Virus record (IMG/VR): IMGVR_UViG_3300042261_002385 | Span: 124,001 to 188,000 of that record | Direction: 5' to 3' (one strand) | Length of the DNA: 64,000 bases | In this document: positions 1 to 55,031 of the stretch, one piece after another | How the letters are laid out: each line of letters opens with the position of its first letter | Numbering within the stretch: the first letter of the stretch is position 1 | The notes under the pieces: model-generated | What the model was told of the DNA's origin: nothing | Seen by the model: only the letters and a program-made list of their open reading frames with translations | The model's database searches: none | Position numbers and translations under genes: made by a program

Positions 1-1875
1 TTTACCGATATTTAATATAAGTGATGATACCGCAATGACACCTGCTAAGATTAAAATAACAAGTCCACCTTTTAGTGCATCAACTGGTTTTAGAACTTTA
101 CCTATGATCTTAGTCGCAAAGGCGTAAGCAACAAATATAATTGCTGTTACTAATCCAAAAACTAACAACTTTAGTATCATACCAAGTGTGAGTTTGTCAA
201 ATGATGATTTAAACTTGGCGAATATAAAAGCTGACAACGCCAGTGATAGTGCCATCAAAGTAAACAACACCGGTAGTAGAATTACTTGTTTAAGAGACAA
301 TTTACCTAAGAATTTTGAGGCAAAAGCCACTATAAAAACTACTACACCCATAGCAAACCCTAAGAAAAGTATTCTTAATATTGTTCCATAACCTAATGCA
401 TCAATTGACTTTTTAAACATAGGTTTAGCAAATATAAATGCTGAAAGAGCCAAAGCTAATGACATAGTCGTCAAGAAAAGAGGTAGTAGTAAAACTTCTT
501 TTATACTTAATTTACCTAATTTATTAGTTGCCATAGCCATTAAAAACGCAACAACACTTATACTAGCTCCTAAAAATAATATTTTGAATATTGTGCCATA
601 TCCAAGTTTATCAAACGAAGATTTGAATTCTGAAAATATCGCAGCAGAAAGTGCGATAGCTAATGCAATAGCAACCATCGCAATAGGTAATAGTAATATA
701 GCAACTGGATTTGTTTTTTCTAATGAGTTTATCAGTTTCGCAATACCTAACGATACAACAGCAAACATACCGGCGATTAATATTGCGGTGATTGCTTGCA
801 TAAATCCGATAGGTTTAATCTGGTTTAAAGCGTGAGATGACCATGTGATACCTTTAGCAATCATAAACATTATCAGTGGTAGACCTAAAATAATTGCAAA
901 CATTTTACCCATTCCAATTGAAGTAGTCTTAAAACCAAAACCTCCACCACTCGCCTGTTGTGAGGTTGTTAAAGACGTAATCAAACCAGCGATACCTCTA
1001 GCGACTATAGCAAACATTACACCAATCAAAATTGCAGTCAATGCTTTCGGGATTGATATAGGTGTAATTTGTGCCAAAAATTTAGATGACATCATAATCC
1101 CTATTGACATAGAGACCATAAGAAGAGGAAGCATCACAGCTGCTTTTAGAACTGTTCCAAATGACATACTTTGCGTCTTCATCTTCATACCTCTGAACTC
1201 CACATCCTGAGATGTTGTCATCGCAGCAATTAATTTTGATATAGCCGGAGCTACTAAAGTGAAGAGTAGAGCTATTGAAGCAGCGGTCAAAATTTGAGGT
1301 ATAGTTATTGGTTTAATCTTTGATAATAACCAAGAAGAAACCATAATACCTAAAGATGCGATGACCATTATCGCCGAAGTAATTGCAGCTTCTCTTATAG
1401 TCATTGGTCCACCAGTTGCGCCCGTAATTTTAGCTACTCTTTCAAACGCAAAAGCTACTAACATAATACCAATTCCAAGTGCAATTACGGAAAGAATATT
1501 TACTTTACCTACAATTTTAAATGCTAAACCTATTGCTAATACGGCTATTGCGATTAATAAAATAGTTGCTACACCTTTTTTGAGTTGAGATTCTTTCTTA
1601 GGATCTCCACCTTCCATAGGTTCAGTTTTTTTATCATCATTTTTTTGTTTACAAAGACCAATTATGGTTTGTTGATTTTTAAGAATCTCTTGAGTATCAG
1701 TTTTTATAGATTTAATTTCAACACTTATTTGTTCCAAAGATTTACCAAAATCTCCAGATTGTAAGGCAGCACCCGTGTCTGACTTCTTTCCATCATCTTT
1801 CTTCTGTAAAGCCTCAACTAATGCTTCCAGTCCGAGTGATAAGTTATCTAATGCTGCTAATAATTGTTTATCCAT
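1..1875 (-). CDS. Tape-measure-like protein, 3'-truncated by window edge (not in ORF track)
   Basis: ATG at 1875 (MDKQLLAALDNLSLGLEALVEALQKK...), open to position 1; long Ala/Ile/Leu/Gly-rich hydrophobic helical repeats (e.g. SSFDKLGYGTIFKILFLG / KSIDALGYGTILRILFLG); late-type promoter at 1899-1909. The + strand ORFs at 188-1588 are its antisense shadows. Confidence 0.7.
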   Translation of the reverse strand, partial: MDKQLLAALDNLSLGLEALVEALQKKDDGKKSDTGAALQSGDFGKSLEQISVEIKSIKTDTQEILKNQQTIIGLCKQKNDDKKTEPMEGGDPKKESQLKKGVATILLIAIAVLAIGLAFKIVGKVNILSVIALGIGIMLVAFAFERVAKITGATGGPMTIREAAITSAIMVIASLGIMVSSWLLSKIKPITIPQILTAASIALLFTLVAPAISKLIAAMTTSQDVEFRGMKMKTQSMSFGTVLKAAVMLPLLMVSMSIGIMMSSKFLAQITPISIPKALTAILIGVMFAIVARGIAGLITSLTTSQQASGGGFGFKTTSIGMGKMFAIILGLPLIMFMIAKGITWSSHALNQIKPIGFMQAITAILIAGMFAVVSLGIAKLINSLEKTNPVAILLLPIAMVAIALAIALSAAIFSEFKSSFDKLGYGTIFKILFLGASISVVAFLMAMATNKLGKLSIKEVLLLPLFLTTMSLALALSAFIFAKPMFKKSIDALGYGTILRILFLGFAMGVVVFIVAFASKFLGKLSLKQVILLPVLFTLMALSLALSAFIFAKFKSSFDKLTLGMILKLLVFGLVTAIIFVAYAFATKIIGKVLKPVDALKGGLVILILAGVIAVSSLILNIGK

Positions 1876-7242: not shown

Positions 7243-8247
7243 TTATTTTATTTTTAAATGTATATAAAGCCAAAATGATTCTGGTTTAACGCTAATCAAT
7301 ACTTTATTAGACCATTTTTTTGTCATTAACCAATTTGTAAAATTGTTTTTGATATTTTGATATTCACCTTCATCAAGTTTTCCATTATCCCAACGACCAA
7401 CTCCGTAGTATCCAAAAGTTATAACTCTATCTCTCAACATAGGAGTAAGTTTTTTTTCAAAATAACCAGGAGTAAAAGTCTTCATATCTAGTTTAATCTG
7501 ACCTATTGTCAAAATATCTAAATAATTTAGATTGACTATCTCTTTCTTTAAGGAAGAGGCCGATTTTGATTCTAAACTTAGAATCCATTTTACAACTGAT
7601 TGTGATAGTTTAAATTGACCAATTGGAAATCTCATATCATATTCAATACCATATTCAAACTGACCAGAACAATTTAGTCCAAAATATAAACCAAGTTCAT
7701 TCTTACCATAGTCTATTAAATGAGTATATCTATCTAAACTTCTAAATCTTGCAAATATTTGTCTAACGAATTCAGAATTTAAATTCTGAAAAGAATAATA
7801 AAGTAGAAAATCTTCAGGACATAAAGACCAGTTAGGATTTGATTCTTTCAGACCCAAAGCTGTAAGTGACTTTAAAAATGAATTAAAAATACCTTTACCA
7901 GCTACACTCACTTCAGATTGAACCTCAATTGATTCACCCAATAACTCAGTTGTATCAGTAGAAGGTGTGACTACAGGTTGTTTATCCTGTATACCATTTT
8001 GTAGATAGTTTTCTATTTGAAGTTTTATTTCAAGTTTTGCTCTATCGTCTAATAAATTTACCGCATTTACTAAATCAATTGTTGGATTAATATCCTCTCC
8101 ACCATATAGTTTATTATGATCATCAATATATCTATTTACAATATTCAATATATATTCATCTTCACAAAGTGATTCTATCCACTTACCAAAAGACTCGAAA
8201 TCTTCAACAGATTCGGAAATAAATTGTAAATATCTTTTTATCAACAT
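7243..8247 (-). CDS. Putative internal head protein (CTS-like)
   Basis: Starts MLIKRYLQFISES; late-type promoter at 8252-8262, 4 nt from ATG. Confidence 0.6.
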   Translation of the reverse strand: MLIKRYLQFISESVEDFESFGKWIESLCEDEYILNIVNRYIDDHNKLYGGEDINPTIDLVNAVNLLDDRAKLEIKLQIENYLQNGIQDKQPVVTPSTDTTELLGESIEVQSEVSVAGKGIFNSFLKSLTALGLKESNPNWSLCPEDFLLYYSFQNLNSEFVRQIFARFRSLDRYTHLIDYGKNELGLYFGLNCSGQFEYGIEYDMRFPIGQFKLSQSVVKWILSLESKSASSLKKEIVNLNYLDILTIGQIKLDMKTFTPGYFEKKLTPMLRDRVITFGYYGVGRWDNGKLDEGEYQNIKNNFTNWLMTKKWSNKVLISVKPESFWLYIHLKIK

Positions 8248-22906: not shown

Positions 22907-22934
22907 ATGTTATATATTAATTTATGAAATTAAA

Positions 22935-32195: not shown

Positions 32196-32361
32196 TATTC
32201 CTCTATAAATATCATTGTTTATAAGAAAAATACTCAAACAAACAAAATATTTTTTGATATATAACATTAGCTGTTCGCTAACTTATGTCGGGTATCAAAA
32301 GGATACCTTTGAGATTTAGAAATGAATCAAAGATATAGGTCTAAAAATAAAATGAATAACT

Positions 32362-33294
32362 ATGGCAAAACAAATTGCAAGTAGCAATTCCAAGCCAGGA
32401 GCTTGGATTGTATCTCCTAAAGATAGGGGAAGAAAACAAATCAAAAGTGGAAAAGTCTTCTTAAAAGACGGAGACGAATTCGAAATCGAATTATTTAACT
32501 CACTAACCGTTTCAGTTCTGTCTGATATAAAATTAAACGGTCAATCAATCTCAAAAACAGGATTAGTCATAAAACCAGGTCAACGTGTTTACTTAGACTG
32601 CTTTATTGATGATAGAAAAAAATTCAAATTTTCAACATACGAAATTGAAAACTCTGGAGAAGCATTAGATGCTACTCAGAACAATGGTGTATTAGAAGTT
32701 TTCTTTTATAAAGAAGATGTTATTACTTTAGATAACTGGCAAAGAAAGTTTGATAGAGTGATAGTTGAAAAATACTACCCTTATAATCCTTACCCGTGGT
32801 ATAATCCATATAGAGTCTATTGTGGTTCAGGAACAATTAGTGGTGGAACAGTAGTGACTACAAACGGTAATCCTTTTAATATTAATGCTTCTAGTGGTCT
32901 AATTGGTGAAACAACAACTGCTTATAACTCATCAAATAATATAAATTGTAGTTATACTTCTCAAGTTGATTTATCTAATTTAAATGTTGCTGGTTCTCTT
33001 TCAACAAACTCTATTGAAACAGGTAGAGTTGAAAAAGGTGAAAAATCAAAACAACAATTCACTGAGGTAGATATGGAATTTGAGAAACATTATATTGCTT
33101 CTACTATTATACAAATTCTTCCAGAAAGTAGAAAACCAGCTGAAGTAAAGCAAATGAAAACTAAACAAAGTCAGTTACTTTCTTCAGATGAAGTGATTAA
33201 TCTTATCAAAAAGTTAGGTGATTTACATTCATCAGGAATCCTAACAGATGAAGAGTTCTCAAAAAAGAAAGCAGAACTACTTTCTAAAATCTAA
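32362..33294 (+). CDS. Hypothetical protein with C-terminal SHOCT domain
   Basis: C-term INLIKKLGDLHSSGILTDEEFSKKKAELL fits SHOCT; N-terminal beta-sandwich-like region of unknown function. Confidence 0.65.
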   Translation: MAKQIASSNSKPGAWIVSPKDRGRKQIKSGKVFLKDGDEFEIELFNSLTVSVLSDIKLNGQSISKTGLVIKPGQRVYLDCFIDDRKKFKFSTYEIENSGEALDATQNNGVLEVFFYKEDVITLDNWQRKFDRVIVEKYYPYNPYPWYNPYRVYCGSGTISGGTVVTTNGNPFNINASSGLIGETTTAYNSSNNINCSYTSQVDLSNLNVAGSLSTNSIETGRVEKGEKSKQQFTEVDMEFEKHYIASTIIQILPESRKPAEVKQMKTKQSQLLSSDEVINLIKKLGDLHSSGILTDEEFSKKKAELLSKI

Positions 33295-33321
33295 AACTAA
33301 ATAAACGAACAGCTATAAATG

Positions 33322-33349
33322 AAAAGAGAGACTTAGGTCTCTCTTTTTT
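33322..33349. terminator. Intrinsic terminator, probably bidirectional
   Basis: aaaagagagac-ttag-gtctctctttt between convergent genes. Confidence 0.8.
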
Positions 33350-34213
33350 TTAGAAATGTTTTTTGACTTCCGATGAAACCTCATCAATAGTCATTTGACC
33401 ACCTGATTTATTTCTTGTATTTACAACAACATCATAATTTCCTTCAGGTTGAGGTTTAGTATAAATCCAATACTCTTTTTCATCTTCTTTTATACCTAAT
33501 TTATTTAAGAATTCATCAACCCAAGATTGATCTGTAAATAACTCTTTTACAGAATTTTTATTCCATGATTTTTCACTATCTACACCACCCTTCTCAGGTT
33601 TTGCCTCATACTTAAAACAATAAGCACCAACAAAAACTCCTTTAGGATCTCTAGCATCAGTTCCTTTTCTTCTTTCTATATTCAAAATTAAATGATCAAT
33701 TGGAGCATGTACTAAAATCCATTTTGGTTTTGATAGTCCTGATTTAGTAGCGCACTCTAATATTGTTCCTTGAACATCATCATATATTACATTTTTTTGT
33801 TGATTAGTTCTTCCAAATGTTCCATTTTTATCTTTAAGACCTATTTTTGATATTTTACCACTTTTTGCTTCTTGTGCCATAAACCATCTAGCCGCTTTTT
33901 CAAAATCATCAGTACCGGGACTTGTTTTATAAGGACATCCAGGATATATTTCAGATAACTTAGGTTTATCTTCATTACCAAAATTTTCCATTCCCGCCTC
34001 CTCATACATCAAATTATAAAATGAGTCTACGGCTAGAACACACCAATCAGGTGATAGATTTTTAAGAGCTGCACTTTTACCAGAACTAGAAGTTCCATCT
34101 AAAAGTATTTGTTTTGATGGATTTGATAATTCTTCAATGCTTGATTGTTTGACATCAATCCCCGGAAGTGATTCACCTTCCATAAAATTTTCGTATAACT
34201 TTAAGTATTTCAT
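33350..34213 (-). CDS. P-loop kinase (chloramphenicol-phosphotransferase-like) with CTS-like N-terminus
   Basis: ILLDGTSSSGKSA Walker A, LAVDSFY, IYDDV; starts MKYLKLYENFME. Confidence 0.65.
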   Translation of the reverse strand: MKYLKLYENFMEGESLPGIDVKQSSIEELSNPSKQILLDGTSSSGKSAALKNLSPDWCVLAVDSFYNLMYEEAGMENFGNEDKPKLSEIYPGCPYKTSPGTDDFEKAARWFMAQEAKSGKISKIGLKDKNGTFGRTNQQKNVIYDDVQGTILECATKSGLSKPKWILVHAPIDHLILNIERRKGTDARDPKGVFVGAYCFKYEAKPEKGGVDSEKSWNKNSVKELFTDQSWVDEFLNKLGIKEDEKEYWIYTKPQPEGNYDVVVNTRNKSGGQMTIDEVSSEVKKHF

Positions 34214-36169: not shown

Positions 36170-37366
36170 TTATATATTAATTTCTGGTTTAATAAAATTA
36201 TTGTTTTGTATACAAAGTTTAATCTTTTCAATAACCATTTCGGATGATATTTCAGTTGAACACTCATAATTTTTATTTCTTGGGCAATATGACCAACCAT
36301 TTTGACTATGATTTGGAACAGTTATATCATTCCAACAAGAATTACAAACATTAGGATTGAAGACTCTATATGGATTTGAAAACTCACTGTTTGGATTTGA
36401 AAAACCTGAAATCATAACAACTGGTTTATTGAGAGCCCAAGCTAACCATGAAAGACCAGAACCAAGACCAATAAAAAAATCACAATGAATTAAGTCCGTA
36501 ATTCTTTCTTGTAATGGAAAATCACCAGTTTTATTAACAACTCTATTGGGTGCTGAGTTGACAATTCCATCTTTTCCGAAATTGTCATTTTTATCTATAC
36601 ACAAAACATCATAACCTATTGATACTAAATAGTCAACAACTTCTTGCCAACCAGTTTTATTGTTCCAATATTTATACTGTGCCGTGCTTTGAACTCCAAT
36701 ACAAACATATGGTTTTTGATGGAACCTATCAGTGTTCTCAACAAATATATTTGGTCTTTCTTCAACATAATCCATACCCAACATATCAGAAGCAACTTTA
36801 GAAAGAGTTACCGTTCTAAGACTTGGAATTCGAGAGTAGAAACCTAAATCAAAACTAGCATAATAACAATGACATGGTGTATAAAAACAAAAGAATTTTC
36901 TACAAGAACTATTTTTTAGACCAGGAATTATTGTATTATCACCTCTATCTGGATTTGGTTCAACATCAGTAAATGAAATATCAGTATAGACATTTTCAAA
37001 CAAGTCTTTGAATGCGCAACTAACATATAATTCACATTTATGAAGTTTTTGAAATCTATCTACTTGAGCCATCCATGCAATACAATCACCTAAAGCGTGG
37101 CTATCAAAATTCAATTTAACTTTTTTTCCTTCTAAATTCATTTCATCAGAAAAAATTAAATTATCTTCAAAATATACTTTTACTTGATATTTTGTGAATT
37201 TATAATTGATAGAGTGAGGATCGTAACTAGTCAAACTCTCATTTGTAACAACATTTAAAAGTTCAGTCTTACCATCAGTGATTATTATGTTATATGACCT
37301 CCAATTAGGACAAATGATTTGAATATGACAACCATCGCAATAACTAACTGTAATTTTTGGACTCAT
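36170..37366 (-). CDS. Autotransporter O-heptosyltransferase-like (TibC/Aah, GT9-like) glycosyltransferase
   Basis: ALGDCIAW, KPYVCIGVQSTAQYKYWNN..GWQEVVDYL, FFIGLGSGLSWLAWA, PVVMISGFS, and Cys cluster CNSCWND...CPR...EC. Confidence 0.82.
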   Translation of the reverse strand: MSPKITVSYCDGCHIQIICPNWRSYNIIITDGKTELLNVVTNESLTSYDPHSINYKFTKYQVKVYFEDNLIFSDEMNLEGKKVKLNFDSHALGDCIAWMAQVDRFQKLHKCELYVSCAFKDLFENVYTDISFTDVEPNPDRGDNTIIPGLKNSSCRKFFCFYTPCHCYYASFDLGFYSRIPSLRTVTLSKVASDMLGMDYVEERPNIFVENTDRFHQKPYVCIGVQSTAQYKYWNNKTGWQEVVDYLVSIGYDVLCIDKNDNFGKDGIVNSAPNRVVNKTGDFPLQERITDLIHCDFFIGLGSGLSWLAWALNKPVVMISGFSNPNSEFSNPYRVFNPNVCNSCWNDITVPNHSQNGWSYCPRNKNYECSTEISSEMVIEKIKLCIQNNNFIKPEINI

Positions 37367-37396: not shown

Positions 37397-38035
37397 TTAG
37401 TATTTATAGTTCTTAGTAGATTTACGACACTTAATTTGACTTTTCACATTATTCATTTCTGAACTACCAAACTCAAGTCTAGCATTTTTTCTTTTCATTA
37501 CTAAGCCTTCAATCATATCAATTGGTGTTAGTTGATTGAAAAGATCGTAGAATCCATTAAGATAAGATTTGACTCGTAATACATTTTCAGAAACTGTGAA
37601 TAAGTAATCTTTTTCTGAATTAATTTGACCATAAAGCTGGTCTAAAAGACTGACTCTTTCTTCAAATGTTTTACCAACTAAATATTCGCCATCAAAGCAT
37701 AGAATATCAAAAATTACAAACTTATGATTGAATGGTTGACTAGTTTCATCCAATTTTGATTTATTGAGATATTCGCCATTAAGTATCATCCATCCACCAT
37801 TTCCTCTATAAAGAGACTTGACTTCTTCATCGGTCAGTCTAAAATTAGTTAGTCTTTGATTGTGACGGTTCATCACGATAAATTTAAGACCATTTGTAAA
37901 AATCAAACAGTTAGAACCATTGAGTTTTGGCTGTGCTAAAAGACTATCATTGTCCCAGAAGTTTAAATCATCCGGCGATATAGCATTTTTAGGTCGAGGA
38001 GGATAAATATAACGATAGTTTATATATTTTGGCAT
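37397..38035 (-). CDS. ATP-dependent ligase, adenylation domain only (RNA or DNA ligase)
   Basis: QPKLNGSN (motif I, Lys intact), LNGEY (III), FVIFDIL (IIIa), IEGLVMK (IV), KCRK (V); 212 aa. Confidence 0.8.
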   Translation of the reverse strand: MPKYINYRYIYPPRPKNAISPDDLNFWDNDSLLAQPKLNGSNCLIFTNGLKFIVMNRHNQRLTNFRLTDEEVKSLYRGNGGWMILNGEYLNKSKLDETSQPFNHKFVIFDILCFDGEYLVGKTFEERVSLLDQLYGQINSEKDYLFTVSENVLRVKSYLNGFYDLFNQLTPIDMIEGLVMKRKNARLEFGSSEMNNVKSQIKCRKSTKNYKY

Positions 38036-49893: not shown

Positions 49894-51960
49894 TTACATT
49901 TCATCGACCCAAGGTTTCTTACCTCTTCTATCTAATTTAGCTAATAATTCTTTCCACTCTTCCGGTTCAAATTTAATAGCATTTTCTTTTAAGAATGTTC
50001 CAATTTGTTTCTTAATATCCTCATTAGGTAGTTTAGTAGTGTGTCCCATCCAAGCAAATGCATCAACAAAACCACTTTTACAACCTCTATTCATTTGGTC
50101 ATTTATGATGTCCATTCTACCATATTCTGCAGCCCATTTGATTACGAAGTTTTTACCATTTTCCTCTTGTTTAACACCATACTTTAGAAGCATTTGATAC
50201 CCAGCAAAATAAGATTCACCAATCTCAGTTCTACTTTTCCAAGAACCTTTACAAACTTTTCTTATTGGTAAATTAGAATTGAAATTAGGATCGGCTCCTG
50301 CTTTCAGACAAAATTCTAAAGCGTCCTCATCACAAACTATATTATTGAACACATCACCAGTTAGAACTGCGTGATTTTGAACTAAAAGTTTTATCATTTC
50401 CATATTCTTAGCCTTAGCTATTGCTGAATCTGAACCTTTTTGAAGATTTGCAGTTCCACCTAAAGCGAATATCATTTTAACTCTTTCAATATCATCATCT
50501 TCTACAGCATTTATCAAAGCTTTTCCATTGTCTCTGTTAATATCAGCTCCGTACTCCTTAACATATCTTTGTAAATCCTCGGCTGTTATCTGTCTTTCTC
50601 TACCGGTCTCTGGGTCTGGAATTGTTTTTTTGATAATAAATTTCTCGGCTTCTTTTGCCTTTTTTCTTCGTTCAATTTCATCTTGACTAAGAGGCTGTAA
50701 AATGTCCCAAATACTATCACTTATTCCATACTCACTTTCCCATTGTCTTAAAAGAGATTTAAACTCACCACCAATATAACTGTTATTTACAGTCTGACAA
50801 GCACCATTTGAATAAGTTCTATCAGGTTTGATAGTAACTCCAAGAGTCCACCTACTATTTGTGGATGATAAGTTAAAATTATAAATATAATATTGAATGT
50901 TATACTCACCAAGATAGCTATTCCAGTAGCTTTCAGAATTTACAATACAGTGAGAACAGTGAGCATTTAACATTTTATTAGCAGCATATGAATTTACTTC
51001 AACTACCATAATACCAGATTCATTATAAAGAACTTTACAACCTTTTACACCAAGTAAATCATTAACTTTATTTATCTTTTCTACTCTATCTGAATAACCT
51101 TCAGAGCCAGATGCATCTAAGTGTTGTTTAGCGGCTCTAATAAATTCAACAAGTGGATTATCCATTGTAGTGAATCTAAATAAACGGCTTCTCCATACTA
51201 ATTTACCAAAATTAGGATTTGGTTTTCCATCTCTTGTAGTTTCATATCTATCTTCTAACATCTCACCAAAGAAAGTTTTCCAAACGATTTCTTTCTTTTC
51301 TTCTGGTTCGATACTTTCAAAACCATTAGCAATCTCCACAAGCTGTTCCATTTGAAGTTCAGTAGCAGCATTAGCAGCTTTCTTTAACTTTGGAGGAAGA
51401 GTATCAACAATCTTTTTAACTTTTCTATACTCACCCAATTTATCTAACTCATCAGAGAGAATTTCAGCATTTGTATGATTGTTCGAAGGATTCGGAATTG
51501 ATTCATCTATAAAGTTGATATCAAACTTCTTAGGTAGTTTATCTAAAAGGTCTTTATATTCAATTAGAAGTGCATAAAGTCTTTCAACTTCTTCGTAAGA
51601 AATATTCTCAACAAAATACATATAAACAAAGTTATAAAGATATCCAATGTTTGGTTGAAACAACTCTCTTAGTTTAACAAACTCTTCATTTCTTTCAAGA
51701 TTTCTTACTTGTTCATCTGTAAGTCTAACATCTCTCATTTTCATTCTGATTTCGTTATACTGTTCAGGTGAGAAATCTCCTTTAGAAAGACCTCTCTTTT
51801 CACCGTGTCTAAGTTTATAATCTAATTCGGAATCGATTAATTTTAAATCTGTAGCCAATTTTTTAATAATAAATTGGTCTTTCAAAAACTTTTTAGACTT
51901 ATCTAAATTTTCATTTAGAGGTTCTAAATTCCTAAATTGATTATATCTAAATAATTTCAT
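49894..51960 (-). CDS. Ankyrin-repeat protein with CTS-like N-terminus
   Basis: C-terminal GADINRDNGKALINAVE, GADPNFNSNLPIRKV, IKWAAEYGRMDII; starts MKLFRYNQF...LNE. Confidence 0.7.
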   Translation of the reverse strand: MKLFRYNQFRNLEPLNENLDKSKKFLKDQFIIKKLATDLKLIDSELDYKLRHGEKRGLSKGDFSPEQYNEIRMKMRDVRLTDEQVRNLERNEEFVKLRELFQPNIGYLYNFVYMYFVENISYEEVERLYALLIEYKDLLDKLPKKFDINFIDESIPNPSNNHTNAEILSDELDKLGEYRKVKKIVDTLPPKLKKAANAATELQMEQLVEIANGFESIEPEEKKEIVWKTFFGEMLEDRYETTRDGKPNPNFGKLVWRSRLFRFTTMDNPLVEFIRAAKQHLDASGSEGYSDRVEKINKVNDLLGVKGCKVLYNESGIMVVEVNSYAANKMLNAHCSHCIVNSESYWNSYLGEYNIQYYIYNFNLSSTNSRWTLGVTIKPDRTYSNGACQTVNNSYIGGEFKSLLRQWESEYGISDSIWDILQPLSQDEIERRKKAKEAEKFIIKKTIPDPETGRERQITAEDLQRYVKEYGADINRDNGKALINAVEDDDIERVKMIFALGGTANLQKGSDSAIAKAKNMEMIKLLVQNHAVLTGDVFNNIVCDEDALEFCLKAGADPNFNSNLPIRKVCKGSWKSRTEIGESYFAGYQMLLKYGVKQEENGKNFVIKWAAEYGRMDIINDQMNRGCKSGFVDAFAWMGHTTKLPNEDIKKQIGTFLKENAIKFEPEEWKELLAKLDRRGKKPWVDEM

Positions 51961-54722: not shown

Positions 54723-54750
54723 AAAACCCACTTACAGAGTGGGTTTTTTT
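54723..54750. terminator. Intrinsic terminator, probably bidirectional
   Basis: aaaacccact-tacag-agtgggtttttt between convergent genes. Confidence 0.8.
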
Positions 54751-55031
54751 ATTTCTATATTTTTGTAATATCTAATTTTTATAATATTTTTAGAGTATCT
54801 ACTCATTATTGATTTATTTAATGAAAATTCATCTTTAACATTTAAACCTAAATCAAATATCTTACTAATCGTTCTTTTTCTATTTACATTTTTAGAACCA
54901 TATTCAACTATTTCTGAGGAAGTAGTCATTGGTATATAAGGTACCCAAACGTATCCAGGTTCTAAATTAGAACTCTTCTTTCCTATTTGAATTTTCTGTT
55001 CACCAGGTATTTGATTTTGGTTAACAAACAT
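54732..55031 (-). CDS. Small protein containing the C-terminal segment of a gp23-type major capsid protein
   Basis: LEPGYVWVPYIPM ... KSIMSRYSKNII..RYY resembles gp23-family GYVYAPYxPL ... KGxMTRYAKxxV...FY; interrupted by NRKRTISKIF. Confidence 0.65.
   Translation of the reverse strand: MFVNQNQIPGEQKIQIGKKSSNLEPGYVWVPYIPMTTSSEIVEYGSKNVNRKRTISKIFDLGLNVKDEFSLNKSIMSRYSKNIIKIRYYKNIEIKKPTL

Follow-up and report, generated by a model that had tools for sequence, protein, structure and literature searches.

The predicted 5' end of an mRNA in a huge phage is complementary to a stretch located just before the terminator of the same transcription unit, and the pairing has been maintained by matching mutations in dozens of related phages, which supports the reading of a closed-loop transcript, whose likeliest role is stabilisation of the mRNA. 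The window that we analysed is a stretch of 64,000 nucleotides, at positions 124001-188000 of the 436,265-bp virus record IMGVR_UViG_3300042261_002385. The 5' arm, TAGCTGTTCG, lies at 32268-32277 and its reverse complement, CGAACAGCTA, lies at 33306-33315, and the pairing is exactly 10 bp, because the neighbouring positions 32267/33316 (T/T) and 32278/33305 (C/A) do not pair. The 10-mer occurs only at these two places in the window and in the whole genome. Between the arms, on the plus strand, lies one ORF (32362-33294) of 310 amino acids with a C-terminal SHOCT domain (PF09851, residues 282-307, E 8e-8). Upstream, on the other strand, is an M28-peptidase-like gene, and downstream is a convergent gene (33350-34213) resembling a CPT-type kinase, which shares with the SHOCT-domain gene a two-way intrinsic terminator (33322-33351) consisting of an 11-bp stem (AAAAGAGAGAC/GTCTCTCTTTT, 33322-33332/33337-33347), the loop TTAG, and a T-run. 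The 3' arm is therefore not the last nucleotides of the RNA, as had been proposed in a preliminary description of this locus, since the terminator hairpin and the U-tail follow it.

Within this window alone, the pairing is not beyond chance. When the 120 nt upstream of each of 58 ORFs were compared with the 60 nt downstream, the locus was placed in a three-way tie for second at the 95th percentile, and the support for the pairing comes from comparison with relatives. The nearest public relatives are metagenomic huge phages of 460-735 kb and, more distantly, the Prevotella Lak megaphages, and the sequencing runs containing this DNA are lake, freshwater, estuary, and aquaculture metagenomes. Protein-guided searches of IMG/VR and of JGI and ENA metagenomes returned 160 loci, of which 124 had both flanks after removal of duplicates. 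In the close relatives, the leader of approximately 95 nt is almost invariant, although the proteins are only 49-56% identical by tblastn, and the motif ACGAACAGC is located between the stop codon and the terminator, whether the next gene is convergent or co-directional. In more distant relatives, both arms change, and they change together while staying at the same two places, as in GCTGTTCG/CGAACAGC, CAACTGTTCATAT/ATATGAACAGTTG, TGCTGTTACAC/GTGTAACAGCA, TTTTAGATGTTCGC/GCGAACATCTAAAA, TTATAGCTGATTA/TAATCAGCTATAA, GAAACCTTGTT/AACAAGGTTTC, GACCTTGTGGTT/AATCACAAGGTC, GGAACCTCAC/GTGAGGTTCC, TGGAACCTCGT/ACGAGGTTCCA, and AAAGCCTCGTGTGGC/GCTACACGAGGCTTT.

Of the 124 distinct loci, 78 have a helix (P1) scoring at least 9 within the fixed windows, against 3% of shuffled 3' UTRs, and there are 54 distinct arm-pair sequences. 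These fall into 10 arm groups that share no 7-mer. When one representative of each group was paired with its own 3' UTR, the mean score was 10.6, while pairing with the 3' UTR of another group gave 5.96 (sd 1.1), and only 2 of 90 swaps reached 8.5. In contrast, a column-wise count within the close class gave only a modest excess (68.5% paired against 61.6% shuffled, with 0 of 500 shuffles as high); most arms in that class are identical and loci without P1 were included, and the alignment-free swap test is the better measure. Furthermore, when whole transcripts of 870-1215 nt were folded, P1 was present in the minimum-energy structure in 49 of 51 cases with distinct arms. In the window, the ten pairs have probabilities of 0.84-1.0, and the duplex energy is -14.3 kcal/mol. 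An excess of G.U over A.C mismatches, which would prove pairing in plus-strand RNA, was indecisive (24 against 15 with a permissive extension, and 6 against 3 in clean helices). Nevertheless, we consider it almost certain that the pairing is real and under selection.

The position of the arms relative to the predicted transcript ends is also conserved. The sequence TTGATATATA ends at 32263, 4 nt before the 5' arm, and the promoter-like element TTTTTTGATATATA (32250-32263) contains the recurrent phage motif [ATG]ATATATA (32256-32263). This motif occurs 45 times in the window, and 35 of the copies are within 150 nt upstream of an ORF start. In many of these cases the ATG follows after only 4-9 nt, which implies that transcription starts about 5 nt after the motif, and by this inference the +1 of the gene is 32268, the first base of the 5' arm. 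The next ORF start usually lies 4-9 or 16-27 nt downstream of the motif, against 98 nt here, confirming that the leader is unusually long for this genome. Across relatives, the 5' arm starts 0-6 nt after the ATATA[TA]A motif, with a mode of 4, and the 3' arm starts a median of 10 nt after the stop codon (11 nt in the window), which is roughly the reach of a ribosome standing on the stop codon, so that termination might not need to open P1. The terminator helix, when pairing of the A-tract with the U-tail is counted, begins 0 nt after the 3' arm in 23 of 67 distinct UTRs and within 3 nt in 41 of 67, while in the window the gap is 5-6 nt. One strand of the 3' UTR would therefore template both the 5' end and the 3' tail, and the closed form would resemble a long hairpin with a nick or small gap where the two RNA ends meet. 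The transcript ends are predicted, since the only RNA data were assembled contigs of relatives of the gene and leader from four metatranscriptomes, and one contig runs on for 98 nt upstream of the predicted start, which could be due to carried-over DNA or read-through.

The leader also contains a Y-shaped three-way junction. The leader alone folds at -22.1 kcal/mol (z = -3.4) into a closing helix, P2 (ACTTATGTC, 32281-32289, with GATATAGGT, 32332-32340), and two hairpins, P3 (GGGTATC-AAAAG-GATACCT, 32290-32308, pairing 32290-32296 with 32302-32308) and P4 (GATTTA-GAAA-TGAATC, 32313-32328, pairing 32313-32318 with 32323-32328), which are joined by the junctions TTGA (32309-32312) and AAA (32329-32331). 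The hairpin GGTATC-AAAAG-GATACC (32291-32307), which had been noted in the preliminary description, is thus one arm of this conserved junction. In 36 hand-picked leaders, and then in 70 distinct matches to a covariance model, the junction was 95.9-96.3% paired, 17 of 22 pairs showed compensatory changes, and 0 of 500 shuffles reached the observed values, nor did any slid control come near. P2 was 97-98% paired, with compensatory changes in 5 of 9 pairs; all 7 pairs of P3 showed changes on both sides, while its loop sequence varies freely; and P4 was 96-99% paired, with compensatory changes in 5 of 6 pairs (for example, GATT/AATC changing to GGTT/AACC and GAGT/ACTC). RNAalifold gave no structure for a mixed alignment of the two leader classes, which MAFFT misaligned, but when the classes were treated apart the same shape was found independently in the distant class, with 14 of 18 pairs compensatory. 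The Y shape is the minimum-energy form of 117 of 124 leaders, against 56 of 620 shuffles, and is also present in Lak-A2, LR756504, and LR756500. With the first G of P4, the junction TTGA forms a nearly invariant TTGAG (T54, T55, G56, A57, and G58), which is conserved in at least 90% of 73 leaders, including homologues with only about 30% protein identity. The model finds one copy in the phage genome. No Rfam 15 family matched 32264-32345 even at E up to 10, and no match to the leader was found in 20 diverse loci at gathering score. A hammerhead ribozyme, another Y-shaped three-way junction, was rejected on its core sequence, because the junctions here are UUGA and AAA/CGAA/CAAA instead of CUGANGA and GAAA, and the position equivalent to G12 is often A. 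A local 5' mini-hairpin (UAGC/GCUA) that might serve as a co-transcriptional placeholder was only weakly supported, with 68% paired. The A-rich translation-initiation region (32341-32361) is predicted to be unpaired both in the leader-only fold and in the full-length fold.

The encoded protein has an Ig-like beta-sandwich, a disordered Y/P/N/T-rich linker, a beta-hairpin, and the SHOCT domain, which about half of the family replaces with a zinc ribbon. It belongs to a virus-only family, and no function could be assigned: Pfam identified only the SHOCT domain (zinc ribbons in relatives), PHROGs gave families of unknown function, a sequence search of solved structures gave nothing, Foldseek gave nothing at E <= 0.001, VIA-align gave only generic Ig-like sandwiches at Z <= 7.3, and the ESM Atlas gave virus-only hypothetical families.

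Lineages without the 3' arm were informative with regard to function, because most of them are not bare at the 5' end. Nine have a local hairpin of 5-7 bp directly 5' of P2, and two others, and probably a third, pair the 5' end with the stretch just before the ATG. The constant feature is therefore a base-paired 5' terminus next to P2, of which the long-range version is the commonest form, and this is what would be predicted for a 5'-end protection device, and not for start-stop proximity, RNase III processing, or ligation. However, a few homologues, including Lak-A2, have the Y leader without a recognisable P1 of any kind, and thus end-pairing is not indispensable to the gene. Of the four functions suggested in the preliminary description (stability, RNase III-type processing, ligation to a circular RNA, and translational control), we favour stability, although in the absence of half-life and expression data we regard it as only about as likely as not. 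In this view, the gene is transcribed as a monocistronic mRNA of about 1.08 kb, in which the 5' terminus is buried in a helix lying end-to-end with the terminator helix, so that both RNA ends are double-stranded and adjacent. This could shield the full-length transcript from decay that depends on a free 5' end (pyrophosphate removal followed by RNase E/G- or RNase J-type attack) and from 3' exonucleases, and would give a long-lived, continuously translatable mRNA, because the start region stays open and a ribosome at the stop codon just fits in front of P1. The nearly invariant TTGAG suggests that something binds the leader, which stability alone does not explain.

A less likely alternative is that the leader is a translational operator or serves ribosome recycling. 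The Y-shaped leader could be the binding site of a host factor or of the encoded SHOCT/zinc-ribbon protein itself, in an autogenous control such as that of T4 gp32 or RegA, with P1 holding the operator in shape, or P1 could bring the stop codon (about 10 nt from P1) next to the start codon (about 20 nt from P2) so that terminating ribosomes re-initiate. The leader is found once per genome, only in front of this gene, and has travelled with the gene down to about 30% protein identity, including the gut Lak phages, and its junction nucleotides are conserved while the helices covary. However, the start region is predicted to be open with or without P1, and thus no on/off switch is visible, the protein is a generic Ig-like sandwich with no recognisable RNA-binding fold, and the lineages with a local 5' hairpin in place of the 3' arm lose the start-stop proximity yet keep the gene. 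Cleavage by a host RNase III, which would trim both ends at once or trigger decay as with icaR (PMC3868564), appears more doubtful. P1 (9-16 bp) lies directly against the terminator stem (11-15 bp) in many loci, giving more than 20 bp of stacked helix, and rRNA precursor stems offer a likely precedent, but P1 alone is shorter than the approximately two helical turns usual for RNase III substrates, the stack is interrupted by the RNA ends, no RNase III was found in the phage, and the local hairpins of 5-7 bp that substitute for P1 would be poor RNase III sites.

Circularisation by a nick-sealing ligase is improbable. The geometry is nick-like in the 23 UTRs without unpaired nucleotides between the 3' arm and the terminator helix, Rnl2-type enzymes seal such self-templated nicks (PMC3884662, PMC7229815), and a ligase-type nucleotidyltransferase gene lies 4 kb away (37397-38035, minus strand). 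However, this ORF, which the preliminary description called RNA-ligase-like, is only 212 amino acids and scores better as an ATP-dependent DNA-ligase adenylation domain (38.2 bits) than as RNA_ligase (27.3 bits, cut-off 27), no Rnl1 or RtcB was found, and no joined form appeared in the four metatranscriptomes, as far as contigs alone can show. In addition, the 5' end would be a triphosphate, requiring conversion to a monophosphate, the U-tail length is heterogeneous, and in the window the two ends are separated by a gap. It is very unlikely that the arms are instead a DNA-level inverted repeat bracketing the gene as sites for a DNA-binding protein or a recombinase. Although they form a perfect inverted repeat flanking one gene and the G.U against A.C asymmetry is weak, the arm sequences differ completely between lineages yet stay complementary, which is the mark of base-pairing rather than of recognition by a conserved protein. 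The arms always lie inside the transcription unit, G.U oppositions are tolerated (AGTGAACAGCT, AATCAC/GTGGTT), local RNA hairpins replace the 3' arm in some lineages, and no inverted gene orientation was seen in any locus. A more speculative possibility, which we consider unlikely although the evidence does not rule it out, is that the Y leader and the ORF-spanning helix together form a new, widespread class of phage cis-acting RNA, which brings the 5' end, the 3' U-tail, the start codon, and the stop codon to one point, and that this arrangement is used actively, either sealed into a circular mRNA or used to hand terminating ribosomes straight back to the start codon in a bacterial-type closed-loop translation device.

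Pairing between the two ends of a bacterial-type mRNA is known from only a handful of single-gene cases, hok, hbs, and icaR, and our literature searches found no earlier description of the present element. Here, the pairing is conserved with abundant covariation across a broad radiation of huge (jumbo and mega) phages from lakes, estuaries, and the sea, and is accompanied by natural experiments such as arm swaps, replacement by a local 5' hairpin, and homing-endonuclease insertions, which make the rules of mRNA end protection directly testable. It also offers a compact natural design (10-16 bp plus a terminator) for stabilising transcripts in hosts that lack Shine-Dalgarno-led initiation.

The closest known cases are hok and hbs. 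In the hok mRNA of type I toxin-antitoxin systems, the extreme 5' end pairs with a 3'-UTR element of the same mRNA (the tac/fbi stem), the closed full-length form is very stable, and the pairing was established by nucleotide covariation across a gene family (PMC9841398). However, the closed form of hok hides the ribosome-binding site, and 3' trimming triggers refolding and antisense control, while the start region is predicted to remain open here. In the B. subtilis hbs mRNA, a 14-bp 5'/3'-UTR interaction just upstream of the terminator, which was proven by compensatory mutations, modulates RNase cleavage (PMC5737220), and the placement of its 3' arm is the same as here. In contrast, the hbs 5' arm is internal, downstream of two hairpins, and masks an RNase Y site, whereas the arm in the phage is at the predicted +1 and is coupled to a Y-shaped leader, and the hbs case is a single gene in one lineage. 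The two UTRs of the S. aureus icaR mRNA also pair (PMC3868564), but there the 3' UTR pairs with the Shine-Dalgarno region, which blocks translation and invites RNase III, while the pairing described here lies about 85 nt upstream of the start codon, with the 5' arm 94 nt upstream of the ATG, and leaves it free. Complementary 5' and 3' flanks also enclose rRNA precursors and flavivirus genomes, but those are RNase III substrates longer than 20 bp or replication signals of RNA genomes, and not mRNAs of a DNA phage. Finally, 5'-terminal stem-loops such as that of the E. coli ompA leader, in which a helix beginning within a few nucleotides of the 5' end seems to protect against 5'-end-dependent decay (Emory, Bouvet and Belasco 1992), are exactly the arrangement of the lineages that have a local 5' hairpin, whereas in most lineages here the second strand of the terminal helix is supplied from beyond the ORF, about 1 kb away.

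In two independent relatives, a free-standing GIY-YIG homing-endonuclease gene is inserted between the Y-shaped leader and the SHOCT-family gene (positions 313-1131 of locus L099 and 383-1108 of locus L106), an insertion that has no counterpart in the window. A partial copy of the 3' part of the leader remains in front of the displaced gene, and in L106 the end-pairing is degraded. Two other related loci, L120 and L128, have no 3' arm, and instead the loop of the leader hairpin P3 (CCACAGAT) is complementary to the loop of the terminator hairpin (ATCTGTGG). L178 (LR756500) contains two separate 5'/3' complementarities, TGTTAAGG/CCTTAACA and TCTCACTTTGTT/AACAAAGTGAGA, whose order does not allow one continuous helix, and the second of which overlaps P2, the closing helix of the leader. 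Within the window, three other ORFs, at 49894-51960 (-), 7243-8247 (-), and 54732-55031 (-), have upstream/downstream complementarities scoring as high as the one studied, for example AAAGGAGAATC/GGTTCTCCTTT.

The promoter-like motif TTTAATATATA, for which 45 sites were found in the window (for instance, at 22918 (-), 36178 (-), 57565 (-), and 8259 (-)), often lies only 4-9 nt before an ATG. Many genes of this phage would therefore be transcribed as leaderless or nearly leaderless mRNAs. An out-of-frame ATG is located at 32351-32353 of the window, 11 nt before the start codon of the gene studied. This ATG alternates with AAG in relatives and is thus not conserved.

When members of the protein family were aligned, it was found that the C-terminal module is swapped within the family: of 96 members, 44 end in a SHOCT domain and about 50 end in a CxxC...CxxC zinc ribbon, on the same Ig-like core. 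In addition, a match to tRNA-Sec (47.2 bits, against a gathering score of 47) is located at 561-653 (-) of L157, next to a distant homologue of the gene. The ORF at 37397-38035 (-) of the window, which was referred to as an RNA-ligase-like gene in the preliminary description, encodes only 212 aa and is located next to a heptosyltransferase-like gene at 36170-37366. This ORF matches the adenylation domain of ATP-dependent DNA ligase (38.2 bits) better than RNA_ligase (27.3 bits, with a cutoff of 27).
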